A stretch of 64,000 bases of DNA from Macrostomum lignano (GCA_002269645.1 NIVC01000655.1:426568-490567), one strand, 5' to 3'. Positions 20,235 through 35,200 are shown, counted from the stretch's first letter. Notes: generated from the letters alone by a model not told the origin. Numbers and translations: made by a program.

Positions 20235-23200
20235 ATGCAACACCGCATGTCCAGCCTCTACAGCAAAAACAGCAGCAGCGGAGTCAAGCGCTCATCTTTC
20301 GATGCTCAGCGTCGAGACAGCGGCGGCGAAGGCGGCAGCGACTCGGAATTCTGCGAGCAAGCTTTTCTAAGCGCCGTCGGCCGCGACGGGTCGAAAGGTC
20401 GACTGCGCACATTTGACGAATTTGCGGCGCTGGTCCAGCAGACGGGCCGCAACCCCAGCCAGCGGGCCCTGCGGCAGTACTGGGACCGGCACAACTCCAG
20501 GCGCACTGGCGTGGATTTGCAGGCGAGTTTATTTTCTTAATAGAAAAATTATTTTTGGTAACAGCTTTTGAATCTCCTCATGGTTGGCTTGCTAATTTAT
20601 ACCTGCAATTTATGTGTGCACCCTGCCGCCCTTAAAGTGACCCATTGCGCCGACTCCCCTGAGCAGGCACGCAAGCGCGCGGGATACGTACGCAGTCAAG
20701 CGCACAGACACACCACTCACACTGGCCCTAACTTTATTTATCGTTAGTCATTTGCTAAAACTTCACTGCGCCTTGGATGTTGGCCCTCGAAGAAGGTAAT
20801 CGCACGAGATCGAGCTGATCTCATAGATTCGAGACATACCAATTTATAGCTCCAAGTACCTCCCCCACCTTCTCGTAGCCATGTCTAATGTCCTTATGTC
20901 TCTTACGAAATTCTGTCTTTATCCGCCAGAGTTTCCTAGAAGTCTGTCGCCAAGAGCCCGTGACAACGCGAGACGAACTTCTCGACGCATTCCACGCCGT
21001 CGACCTCAACTCGGACGGTTATTTATCCCTGGACGAATTCGTCCAGATGCTCAGCTCGGGCGGCGAGCCGATCACCAAGCTGGAGGCCAGGGAGCTGCTC
21101 CAGCAGTACGACAAAAACGGCGACGGAAAATTGGACTACGAAGAGTTCATCGATTTTGTGCTGGGCGACATCAAACGGAGTAGAAAATCGATTGAAGACA
21201 GTCGGCGATTGGATTCGAAACGGGATCGGGATTGGGATCGGGATCGGGATCGGGACTCAGACCGGGACTCAAGGGACGAATCGCCTAAACCGGTTCCGCG
21301 AGGACGAGGCAAAAAAGCGTCGACATCAGCAGGCGGGTCGTCCGCAGCCGCCACCGCCTCCTCCTCGGAGGTTCAAATCGGCAGCGGCCGGACTCCCAGA
21401 GCGCAGGCGGTCAAGCCGCCGGCCGATTTAAAAAAATGGACTCAACGTCGCGTTACCGGATTCTACCTGTTGGACAGCGAGAATAATTCTCAGAGACAAG
21501 TGCTGTCCAGTCACTACACGCTGAATTTGTCAAGCTCAACCAACGTGTACATCACGATGCAGTCGATGCCGCAGGACAAGCTGCAGACAATGCAGTCCGA
21601 GTGCGACATCGGCTTCGCGCTGTTCCGCGACGGCAAACCCGTGGCCGTGTGCGAGTCCCCTGCCGGTAACAAGAGCGCCATCGGGCTGAAGGTGAGGCTC
21701 AGGGACCGGTAGACAGACAGACAGACAGACAGACAGACAGACAGACAGGCAGGCAAGCAGACAGACAGACATGCAGACAGACAGACATGCAGACAGACAG
21801 ACAGACAGACAGACAGACAGACAGACAGACAGACAGACAGGCAGGCAGGCAAGCAGACAGACAGACATGCAGACAGACAGACAGACAGACAGACAGACAG
21901 ACAGACAGACAGACAGACAGACAGACAGACAGACAGACAGACAGACAGACAGACAGACAGACAGACAGACAGACAAACACACACACAGACAGACAGACAG
22001 ACAGACAGACAGACAGACAGACAGACAGACAGACAGGCAGGCAGACAGACAGACACACAGACAGACAGACAGACAGACAGACACACAGACAGACAGACAG
22101 ACAGACAGACAGACAGACAGACAGGCAGGCAGACAGACAGACAGACAGACAGACAGACAGACAGACAGACAGACAGACAGACAGACAGACAGACAGACAG
22201 ACAGACAGACAGGCAGGCAGGCAGGCAGGCAGGCAGACTATAATAGTACATCACTATATATATTTAAACAATCCGAACGCAGGCGGACCTCGGCCCAGGC
22301 GATTACGAGCTGCTGCCCTACTGTATTGGCGACAAGCTGCACATGGAGGCGACATCCAGCAAGGCCAAGTCGGCCACACGAAACAAGAAAATCACTGCGG
22401 CTGGTAAGGCGGCGCTGGAAGACATCTTCAAACTGTGCGACACCAACCAGGATGGCGTGCTGGATAGGGCCGAGCTTCAGGTCAGTCTGTCTGTCTGTCT
22501 GTCTGTCTGTCTGTCTGTTCTACTGTCTGTGTGTTTACGTGGACTTTTTGGAAGTTCAGTAGCCTCGTTAGCTGGACCAACCGGTGTAGGTAGACCACTT
22601 AGGTGGACCACCAAATAATTTTGTCTCTGGTGGGGTTAAGACGTTGATGAGGATCTCACATTAATGTCAGGCGGGTCAAGAAAGGCTTAAGCAATTTTGG
22701 GATGTCTAGCATGGTTTTTTCCAAAGTTATTCGCATTTCAGTTTAGCTGGACCTCCAGCCTGGTCTACCTAAACCGAGCGAGTCTGGTCCACGTAAACCG
22801 AAAAATTTTAGAAAATTTTTCGAAAATCGTCTGTTTGTGTCTGTTTGTGTCTGTTTGTGTCTGTTTGTGTCTGTTTGTGTATAGCAGTTATTAAGCATAG
22901 ATTCAATGCAAAACTGAATTTTTTACAGATCATTACCTTACGAACAAAGGGGTATGTTGGCATCATATTATGACCGCTACTGGCTTTAAAACAATATGCG
23001 TTCAGTTCTTTGACATTCAAGTAGGTACGCAGGTTAATTAAAAATTCTGAAACCTCGTATGCGAAATGAATTTGATACAGTAAACTTTAAACTCCATTTA
23101 ATTAGCTCAGTTCCAGCAATTCCGGTATCGTACTCTGAGCACAGACTCACAGAGTAAGACACCAACGTAAAGAAATCCAATTCGCGAACCAGATCAAACG

Positions 23201-32200: not shown

Positions 32201-35200
32201 AATGCTTCAGTTTGTTAGAATGCAATCAGAACAGATTCCTAGAAAGTGAGCTAGTCCAGCATCAAGGCAGAACATCTGGATGTGTAACGAGAGGCTCTCG
32301 GAGATTCATGGCTTAGATTATCGCCTAGAAGTGCTTTGGAGTAGCTGGTCCACCTAACCTACAGACACAACTCGAACAGATTTCTCTGTCTGTTTGAGGC
32401 TCTGGCTCTCAGAGCCGCCGAGAAAGTTTAGTGCCGAGAATGCTTCAGTTTGTTAGAATGCAATCAGAACATATTCCTAGAAAGTGAGCTAGTCCAGCAT
32501 CAAGGCAGAACATCTGGATGTGTAACGAGAGGCTCTCGGAGATTCCTGGCTCAGATTATCGCCTAGAAGTGCTTTGGAGTAGCTGGTCCACCTAACCTAC
32601 AGACACAACTCGAACAGATTTCTCTGTCTGTTTGAGGCTCTGGCTCTTAGGTGGTCCACATAACCTACAGACACAACTGAAGCAGCTCTCTCAGTCTGTT
32701 TGAGGCTTTGGCTCTCAGAAGGTGGTCCACCTAACCTACAGACACAACTCGAACAGATTTCTCTGTCTGTTTGAGGCTCTGGCTCTTAGGTGGTCCACAT
32801 AACCTATAGACACAACTGAAGCAGCTCTCTCAGTCTGTTTGAGCTTTGGCTCTCAGAAGGTGGTTCACCTCACCTACAGACACAACTCGAACAGATTTCT
32901 CTGTCTGTTTGAGGCTCTGGCTCTCAGGTGGTCCACATAACCTACAGACACAACTGGAACAGATTTCTGTGTCTGTTTGATTGTCAGTTAATTTTATTTT
33001 CTACCTTTGTAGGAGCCTGTGGTTGATTTTGTTCGCCTGAGCTCGACGAGACTGATTGCGTTTCACCGAGATGAAGGTTAAACGAACTGTAAAAGAAGAT
33101 TCAAACCACTAATTGACGAGAAATATAGAAAGGTTCATCATAGAGCTGAGCTGACGAAAGCGGATTCGATGGCTGAGTAAGCTGAAATTCGTGAGAGAGG
33201 CAATGACAGATCAATAACAGAAGCGGTCCGGGACCACGGAGGCAGGGAAGGTCCAGGAGAATATTTCGTAGAAAAATAAGAAGATTAAGCCATCATCTGC
33301 GTGAACGAAAAGATGAAAGTCGGTAAAATGATTGGCTTATCATATGATTGCTCACCAACTCATTCAGTATAATAGGACTGATGTAGTCAAATCAATTTAA
33401 TTTCAGTTTTAGTAACTTTTGTCGTTATTAAAAATGCCCTTCAACTTCTTGTAGGCTCGTACTCGGATGACCTTTTTTAACTAATGGAATCTTACGTTTG
33501 TTAACATGTATTTGAAGCATACATTTTGACCTAAATTAGTTTTAATGACTTTACAGTCATTTGATATGATTCTGTATTTATTTTCAAAATGCTTTATTTT
33601 CATTCACCTTCTTGTATTCACGCGACGCAACTAACTAATGCGATCGTACATTTGTTTAACCCGATTAACCCGATTAATAATGCTAAATAAATTGGTTTGA
33701 ACTTGGGATATTTTCATTAAATGACGTCGTAACCCTTTTATCTGTTCTTTTTGAGAATTTCTGTTTTAATTAGTTCAAAAGAACAGTTTAAAGCAATAAA
33801 TTTTCTACAACGAAAGAGGTCTAACTAAACCAACTGTTTTTTTGCGGTCCACCTAACCCGGTCCCCAAAACGTAGTTAGTGAACCACCACAGTTTCCCCG
33901 AACTGGCTATTCCGTCAAGTTAACAAAAAGATAACCCTAGCTAGCCTTTCGCGTTGTCAAAACAGACTCTATTTTTTAACCGGAATTGCGTGGTCCACGT
34001 AACGCATTAACATAACTCAGGTCCCGCTAAACACACAGACAGTCGTAAGAGTGTCTGTCTGTCTGTGTGTCTGTCTGTCTTAGTGTCTGTCTGTCTGTTT
34101 GTCAGTCTGTCTGTCTGTCTGTCTGTCTGTCTGTCTGTCTGTCTGTCTGTCTGTCTGTCTGTCTGTCTGTCTGTCTGTCTGTCTGTTTGTCAGTCTGTCT
34201 GTCTGTCTGTCTGTCTGTCTGTCCGTCTGTCTGTCTGTCTGTCTGTCTGTCTGTCTGTCTGTCTGTCTGTCTGTCTGTCTGTCAGTCAGTCAGTCAGTCA
34301 GTCAGTCTGTCTGTCTGTCTGTCTGTGTGTCTGTCTGTCTGTCTTAGTGTCTTAGTGTCTGTCTGTCTGTCGGTCTGTCTGTGTCTTCCCATCAAAATCC
34401 ATCACAGCTGGATAAAGCCACCGGCCGCGAACCCCTGCAGGTGTACAACTACATCACCAGCAACGAGGAGCTCACAGACGAGCTGTGGAATGCCCTGCGC
34501 AACATGGTGAAGCTGAGCAACGACGCTCTCGACTTCGAGGGCTTCATCGACCTCAGCGTGCAGGAACTCGAAGAAGACAACTGGAGCGAGGAGAATTTTT
34601 GGATCAACCTGAAAAGCTTCGGCGTCAATCAGGACCTGCTGATGACCGGCGCCTTCGCCTACGAGCTCGAGGTGAACTGCTCAGAGTGCCGAAACTTTGA
34701 GCTGATCGCTGGTAATCCGATGCGCTTCCCGGTTTCCGTGCTGAGCAAGGTGAGGCTATAAACACCTGACACCCAACCCACCTGACATCTAACCCATCTG
34801 ACACCCAACCCACCTGACATCTAACCCAACCTGACATCTAACCCACCTGACACCCAACCCACATGACATCTAACCCACCTGACACCCAACCCATCTGACA
34901 CCCAACCCACCTGACACCCAACCTATTTGACATCTAACCCATCTGACACCCAACCCACCTGACATCTAACTCACCTGACATCTAACCCAACCTGACATCT
35001 AACCCACCTGACACCCAACCTATCTGACATCTAACCCACCTGACACCCAACCCATCTGACACCCAACCCACCTGACACCCAACCTATTTGACATCTAACC
35101 CATCTGGCACCCAACCCACCTGACATCTAACTCACCTGACATCTAACCCAACCTGACATCTAACCCACCTGACACCCAACCCACATGACATCTAACCCAC

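Follow-up and report, generated by a model that had tools for sequence, protein, structure and literature searches.

Why does one copy of an EF-hand gene in Macrostomum lignano span 16.5 kb while its near-identical duplicate spans 4.9 kb? The longer copy, BOX15_Mlig016656g2 (g2), lies in the stretch of DNA analysed here, the final 64 kb of contig NIVC01000655.1 in assembly GCA_002269645.1 (Mlig_3_7), hereafter called the window; the 36.5 kb around g2 is 100% identical to window positions 10238-46701. The shorter copy, BOX15_Mlig016656g1 (g1), is found on contig NIVC01000500.1 of the same assembly (locus L001), Mlig016656g2 being the second member of the cluster. The difference resides in intron 3 of g2, which houses a discrete 11.5-kb insertion, present in one of the two near-identical locus copies, with imperfect inverted ends and no coding capacity. 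We think it probable that this insertion (22519-34051) is a non-autonomous, unclassified terminal inverted repeat (TIR) DNA transposon which recently entered a (TCTG)11 microsatellite, and which carries a satellite derived from its own right-end module. A first-pass annotation, made from the window alone, had likewise suggested an unclassified DNA transposon; the discrete insertion, the inverted termini, the empty-site copy and the non-coding nature of the element all agree with this, the class assignment itself being interpretive.

M. lignano is a model for regeneration and stem-cell research, with a genome that comprises approximately 15% tandem repeats and is difficult to assemble, and the manner in which repeats spread into its introns is poorly understood. 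An element containing an 8.7-kb satellite built from its own end would offer a vehicle for satellite dispersal in this species that is both concrete and open to testing. It would also represent an apparently active endogenous DNA transposon in an organism for which transposon-based transgenesis is wanted.

The empty site and the boundaries of the insertion

Intron 3 of g1 reads GTCAG(TCTG)11TGTG..., and is uninterrupted at the position of the insertion. In the window the insertion has eight TCTG units on its left and three on its right, which together make up the 11 of the empty copy, and deletion of 11,536 bp from the window restores the L001 empty site base for base. Four equivalent deletion frames, 22516-34051 through 22519-34054, each give this result. 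An empty-site copy, of the type for which the earlier annotation had proposed a search, is to be found in the same assembly, and the comparison moves the ends originally placed at 22520 and 34045 to 22519 and 34051. The features which define the site are:

22481-34440, plus strand: intron 3 of BOX15_Mlig016656g2, with a GT donor at 22481 and the annotated acceptor (...ctgcag/GTGTAC) at 34440/34441
22486-22518, plus strand: left flanking microsatellite, (TCTG)8 followed by T
22516-22518 (left) and 34052-34054 (right), plus strand: TGT direct repeat, a candidate 3-bp target-site duplication from the empty-site reconstruction
22519-34051, plus strand: inserted element of 11,533 bp, absent from g1 in the empty-site comparison with L001
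34052-34382, plus strand: right flanking microsatellite, (TCTG)n with interruptions, from which g1 differs by one 4-nt unit and one substitution

In the alignment, window 14026-22534 corresponds to L001 3803-12290, and window 34052-41211 to L001 12272-19434. Between g1 and g2 the left flank shows 28 substitutions over 7781 bp and the right flank four over 5901 bp (99.6-99.9% identity). The insertion has lengthened intron 3 from approximately 0.4 to 11.9 kb (about 30-fold) with the annotated protein unaltered, 610 of 610 residues being identical between g1 and g2. Since the flanks are near-identical and the proteins fully so, the event appears to be very recent and to have left the gene model undamaged. 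The (TCTG)n setting which had been described for the element holds for both flanks, and because the tract is already present in the empty g1 copy the microsatellite is older than the element and was not made by it.

The length of the target-site duplication depends on how the tract is read: it is 3 bp (TGT) if the tract length is unchanged, and 0-3 bp if TGT represents microhomology. A 7-, 11- or 15-bp duplication is possible if the tract formerly had one to three fewer units. Since the right tract of some 330 bp (about 80 units) is nearly unchanged between the two copies, the duplication more likely measures 3 bp or less.

Could the event have run in the opposite direction, with the element old at this locus and lost from g1 by recombination or slippage in (TCTG)n, or by precise excision? 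The direct (TCTG)n repeats around the element could drive a deletion, and the direction of the event is not polarisable without an outgroup. Homologous exchange between the tracts, however, would leave at most 10 units rather than the 8 + 3 = 11 that are found, the empty site has no footprint, and the identity of the flanks, together with array units which are about 98% alike and in many cases identical, gives the insertion a young look. We regard such a loss as improbable. Nor do we give much credence to an assembly artefact, in which repetitive long reads led a satellite segment to be misjoined into the microsatellite of the g2 contig. Mlig_3_7 is a draft assembly from 2017, made with PacBio and Illumina data, of a genome which is very rich in repeats and partly duplicated (PMC5730564), and both junctions do lie inside a microsatellite. 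Yet both return to the same intron and to the same microsatellite unit, collinearity with g1 extends for more than 8 kb on one side and more than 10 kb on the other, and a misjoin would not create inverted termini at the breakpoints; this makes the artefact very improbable.

Terminal inverted repeats

With the ends fixed by the empty site, the first 40 nt of the insertion were set against its last 40 nt in reverse complement. The two have in common a perfect 16-mer, ACTGTCTGTGTGTTTA, which begins 3 nt in from the left end and 8 nt in from the right. A 16/16 match of this type was reached by none of 5000 shuffles and by one of 5000 random pairs of 40-mers from the arms. Over longer stretches the inverted match is 19/22 and 21/25, and the 25-bp inverted termini (21/25) first described are borne out on reading the sequence. 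The 22-mer GTCCACGTAAACACACAGACAG occurs at 22523-22544 on the minus strand with no mismatches and at 34021-34042 on the plus strand with three, and there are no further matches at three or fewer mismatches in the 64 kb (0 expected).

22522-22544, minus strand: left TIR, with a perfect core at 22522-22537 and a copy of the 11-bp motif described below, AGTCCACGTAA, at 22535-22545
34020-34043, plus strand: right TIR, GGTCCCGCTAAACACACAGACAGT, followed by 8 nt (CGTAAGAG) which still belong to the insertion

The right end carries 4-5 additional bases, and the ends are consequently imperfect. As a separate observation, the 12 bases of the left end of the element at 22523-22534 recur without change as the host 12-mer CTGTCTGTGTGT at 34059-34070, which lies 5 nt beyond the insertion point on its right. 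Such a match could have come about by chance in a tract of (TCTG)n/TGTG, could point to how the target is recognised, or could be the mark of a junction formed with the help of homology.

The 11-bp motif

The motif GGTCCAC(G/C)TAA (GGTCCACSTAA) is present in 43 copies in the 64 kb, against an expectation of 0.06, and all of these lie within 22599-34002, that is, inside the element. The six positions originally reported (22762, 22786, 23661, 23857, 33846 and 33992) are all real, the one at 22762 being the variant GGTCTACCTAA. To these must be added the outward-facing minus-strand sites of the left arm at 22535, 22568, 22599 and 22743, which had been overlooked. At the right end the outward-facing sites are those at 33846 and 33992 plus a degenerate terminal copy, GGTCCCGCTAA, at 34020. 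The orientation of the motif is therefore symmetric, with four copies facing outward at the left end and those at the right end likewise doing so.

22535-22796, both strands: left subterminal motif cluster, with minus-strand sites at 22535, 22568, 22599 and 22743 and plus-strand sites at 22762 and 22786
32981-34020, plus strand: right arm, AT-rich and non-coding, with outward-facing motifs at 33846 and 33992

The site at 22599 forms the near-palindrome TTAGGTGGACCACCAAA; near-palindromic sites would suit a dimeric DNA-binding protein, and the position and orientation of the motif suggest that it may be a transposase binding site. GTCCACSTAA is also reminiscent of the P-element transposase site, AT(A/C)CACTTAA, a likeness which we offer as a lead only.

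The same termini bear on a different origin for the insertion, namely that a break in a fragile (TCTG)n tract was repaired by the capture or copying of 11.5 kb of DNA without the involvement of a transposase, the captured piece perhaps including a satellite and the debris of transposons. An extrachromosomal fragment or circle could have been end-joined into the break, the DNA could have been copied by microhomology-mediated template switching, or another (TCTG)n-flanked locus could have acted as donor in ectopic gene conversion. The junctions share no more than 3 nt (TGT), as is typical of microhomology, additional nucleotides lie beyond the inverted match at both ends, and the left end has the above 12-mer in common with the host flank. 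M. lignano readily integrates injected DNA in a random and multi-copy manner (PMC5730564), and a homologous recombination route into microsatellites has been proposed for the plant SaTar elements (PMC5907723). On the other hand, the inverted ends coincide almost exactly with the breakpoints, and the symmetric stacks of outward-facing motifs at both ends have the look of a transposase substrate, which is unexpected in a random fragment. Furthermore, the microsatellite-like ends of the element are inverted relative to one another, so that only one side has homology to the direct (TCTG)n flanks. On balance we consider capture unlikely.

Coding capacity and end-like sequences of the arms

The left arm (22519-24277) and the right arm (32981-34051) show no similarity to each other past approximately 25 nt and the scattered motif. 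Neither arm contains an open reading frame (ORF) of any substance of 70 or more amino acids, and stop codons per frame number 44 and 28 in the two arms. A 1389-amino acid chimera of all the open stretches of the arms and the satellite unit, from which microsatellite-derived parts were excluded, found no match among 5.8 billion proteins; there is accordingly no detectable exon capture, and no gene-caller ORFs on other copies of the element were revealed by this query. The element is non-coding and therefore non-autonomous.

Three plus-strand segments of the left arm resemble the right end or the short satellite units described in the next section:

22829-22880, plus strand: (GTCTGTTTGT)5, which with the motif at 22786 mirrors the short unit (motif, spacer, GTCTGTTTG)
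23661-23716, plus strand: internal right-end-like copy R1, GGTCCACGTAAACACATGTGCAG, followed 15 nt on by (ACAG)4 at 23699-23716
23857-23899, plus strand: internal right-end-like copy R2, GGTCCACGTAAAC, 19 nt and ACACAGACAGT

When 22829-22880 was compared with the architecture of the short unit the alignment score was 25, with a shuffle maximum of 23. Two places in the left arm thus contain building blocks of the short unit, 22780-22880 with the motif, a spacer and (GTCTGTTTGT)5, and 23648-23671, and the region of R1 contains a 55-nt inverted match (74.5%) to the left end and its flank. No second copy of the element exists in the 64 kb or in L001. A metagenome scan with GTCCACSTAAN{3,4}ACAGACA returned 91 contigs with one match each, and since none was similar to the element by BLAST these matches are ascribed to chance.

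The satellite array

The array units were derived from Tandem Repeats Finder (TRF), which places the array start at 24263, and from direct parsing. The resulting 8.7-kb satellite extends over 24278-32980 and consists of 35 units of 234-243 bp and six of 51-71 bp, all 41 on the same strand:

24278-32584, plus strand: 35 long satellite units of 234-243 bp, about 98% alike, in right-end orientation
32585-32980, plus strand: six short units of 68/71 bp which alternate between two subtypes, with the final unit cut short at 51 bp

All 35 long units begin with GGTCCACCTAACCTACAGACA. The earlier statement that every unit shares this start is correct for the long units, while four of the six short ones carry 1-2 changes (GGTCCACATAA three times and GGTTCACCTCA once); the proposal that the monomers start with a copy of the right-end module is upheld. 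The short units are equivalent to the first 63 bp or so of the long unit, and the long unit to a short one plus approximately 170 bp. A short unit of 68/71 bp is laid out as motif, ACAGACAC, a 17-nt spacer, and CTGTCTGTTTGAGG..., and the junctions between short units, TTAGGTGGTCCACMTAA, are 17-nt near-palindromes similar to that at 22599.

Variant patterns recur in the array as multi-unit blocks: units 2-7 appear again as 8-13, and 14-15 as 32-33, units 20-22 resemble 26-28, and nine units equal the consensus. Because of this recurrence the array appears to have grown by unequal exchange or slippage of multi-unit blocks and not by serial transposition. The roughly 40-fold amplification originally proposed thus stands as a count, with some 41 motif-bearing units, its route being array dynamics with block repeats and not repeated transposition. 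Across the first 26 columns (motif plus ACAGACA) none of the 35 long units shows any variation; the number of variable columns in positions 1-22 is zero where 3.8 would be expected (P ~0.02), weak evidence since the columns are not independent. Unit 16 (27838-28080) is rearranged, measuring 243 bp with 23 differences from the consensus and an internal duplication of the GAGAGGCTCTCGGAGA segment.

An array of structured RNA genes (SL RNA, tRNA, snRNA or rRNA) was considered and rejected. Rfam gave no match at E values up to 1 for 22300-25300, nor at gathering thresholds for the whole window, ARAGORN found no tRNAs, and the fold of the satellite unit is unexceptional (z-score -1.3).

Assessment of the transposon reading

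Several points weigh against the interpretation of this insertion as a TIR transposon. There is no unambiguous target-site duplication, and the 3 nt of TGT could be microhomology. Three nucleotides on the left and eight on the right lie outside the good inverted match, and 12 of the 16 perfect TIR bases (CTGTCTGTGTGT) are found also in the host microsatellite, 5 nt away from the insertion point. The analysis covers a single copy of the element, the ends of which match no recognisable superfamily consensus. Finally, an alternative parsing is possible in which the element occupies 22535-34051 and is bordered by an imperfect 19-bp duplication (15/19).

We favour the parsing with the left end at 22519 over one which starts at 22535, because the motif and ACACAGACAG are found together, independently, in four types of location. 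These are the right terminus, the internal sites at 23661 and 23857 (split by 19 nt in the latter), all 41 units, and the left terminus, where the motif + ACACAGACAG consensus appears exactly in reverse complement.

Proposed mechanism

If the insertion is a transposon, a transposase supplied in trans would bind the 11-bp near-palindromic motif, which is stacked facing outward within the ~230 bp at the left end and the ~210 bp at the right, and would cut beyond the adjoining ACACAGACAG, itself resembling the (TCTG)n target. By this means the element would recently have entered the intronic (TCTG)11, duplicating no more than 3 bp (TGT). The satellite may have been born within the element from a short right-end module consisting of the motif, ACAGACAC, a spacer and CTGTCTGTTTG. 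Modules of this type would persist in the left arm, and the 68/71-bp units would be tandem copies of the module. One unit then presumably gained about 170 bp to become the 238-bp unit, and unequal exchange or replication slippage, acting on blocks of several units, could have raised the number of these to 35. Through this expansion from its right-end module the element would now carry more than 40 right-end-like sites in one orientation. Such sites might titrate transposase or function as alternative ends, and the roles of transposase sink, satellite-dispersal vehicle or silencing trigger put forward in the earlier annotation are speculative.

There is a hint, from one insertion, of a preference for (TCTG)n tracts: (ACAG)4 stands beside the internal end-like copy R1, and the host 12-mer identical to the end of the element is near the insertion point. 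A more ambitious proposal is that the element belongs to an active family whose microsatellite-mimicking cleavage end homes to (TCTG)n/TGTG tracts as pseudo-ends; each monomer would be usable as an alternative right end, and pairing of the left end with different monomers would spread arrays of variable length through gene introns. We view this proposal as improbable. If it is true that the ends home to (TCTG)n, microsatellite-targeted transposition, so far mainly a property of plant Mutator-like elements (MULEs), would be extended to an animal.

Comparison with known elements

The kind of element is known, with parallels in Tetris, Galileo and the SaTar/Micron-like elements, while the family appears to be undescribed. 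Tetris of Drosophila virilis is also a non-autonomous DNA transposon with tandem repeats from its own terminal region; these repeats, of approximately 220 bp, expand into satellite-like arrays of kilobase size, as they do here (PMC4079207). In FB, Galileo and Tetris the tandem repeats make up long inverted arms at both ends, whereas the present array has one orientation. Membership among such foldback-like elements fails on this account, 41 of 41 units being on one strand and the arms being dissimilar beyond ~25 nt.

The plant MULEs Micron, SaTar, TAFTA and MuTAnT are TIR elements located within microsatellites, and their junctions often depart from a simple duplication of fixed length (PMC5907723, PMC4486113); these are points of resemblance to the M. 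lignano element. They are 0.4-1.7 kb in size, lie mostly in (TA)n, and have TIRs of 40-250 bp and duplications of about 10 bp outside microsatellites. Here, in contrast, we have a single 11.5-kb animal copy in (TCTG)n with TIRs of ~22 bp, a duplication of 3 bp or less, and no visible expansion of the flanking microsatellite.

The CMC (CACTA/Mirage/Chapaev) elements have short TIRs, 2-3-bp duplications, numerous subterminal copies of a short transposase-binding motif in two orientations and, frequently, internal tandem arrays. The 3-bp repeat and the stacked subterminal motif repeats are CMC-like. The left end, however, starts TCTAC and has no CACTA or CACNN, and a CAC terminus is obtained at the right end (CACTCTTACG) only after a 2-nt shift of the boundary.

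Helitrons and Helentrons insert at A^T or T^T without duplication, and have a 5' TC, a 3' CTRR and a subterminal 3' hairpin. A Helitron or Helentron (DINE-1/HINE) origin was rejected, as the (TCTG)11 empty site is without AT or TT and the 3' end reads ...GTAAGAG. The sole structure near the 3' end of the element is a weak 5-bp stem ~45 nt from the end.

With regard to the satellite, comparable cases are the birth of satellites from transposons through tandem dimers and unequal exchange (McGurk and Barbash 2018, PMC5932611) and the satellite-bearing MITE-like or Helentron-derived elements of bivalves and Drosophila (PMC5139131, PMC2374699). The present case resembles these in that a repeat internal to the element seeds the satellite, the array stands beside a microsatellite, and arrays are dispersed in mobile units. 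The monomer described here corresponds to the right-end module plus about 215 bp, and not to a whole element.

The host gene and its two copies

The annotated g2 protein reads ...DRAELQ/VYNYITS across the intron 3 junction, in agreement with the exon translations. A protein search with the translated exons led to BOX15_Mlig016656g1 at 97% identity, the shortfall from full identity being due to the splice acceptor chosen for translation. A second in-frame AG (cacag/CTGGAT, 34404/34405) is present within 34381-34440, 36 nt upstream of the annotated intron 3 acceptor; the deposited protein uses the downstream site (34440/34441) only. Mlig_3_7 contains approximately 180 Mb of duplicated blocks which are at least 95% identical and stem from extra chromosomes of the DV1 line (PMC5730564), and for this reason g1 and g2 may be alleles or recent duplicates.

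A fragmented remnant of a hAT transposase (DUF4371 plus hAT dimerisation domain) is located on the minus strand at 45040-49400; on the g1 side the stretch concerned is L001 22424-24925. The collinearity of g1 and g2 ends at window 45039 / L001 22423, the remnant being just past that point, and their identity falls to 91.7% across the last 1.8 kb ahead of the break. Here g1 and g2 probably differ in structure for a second time. As a potential transposase partner for the element the hAT remnant (45.8-47.2 kb) was rejected, since it holds no copies of GGTCCACSTAA.

Other repeats of the window

Intron 2 of g2 is filled at 21711-22238 by (AGAC)132, whose reverse complement is the (TCTG)n repeat that the element entered in intron 3. 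Throughout the window (1-64000) nearly every intron or intergenic stretch has a 16-38-bp minisatellite or long microsatellite of its own, examples being those at 3714-4381, 7947-8814, 13878-14623, 37780-38843, 40376-42030, 57938-59621 and 61369-62980, and many of them vary in copy number between g1 and g2. The 28-bp minisatellite CTGAGGATCTGGGAGGCTGGCCCAGCAA is found at both 11180-11270 and 17027-17261, 6 kb apart and with unrelated flanks. Since this one repeat occupies two sites with no flanking sequence in common, minisatellites seem to disperse in the M. lignano genome by some route.

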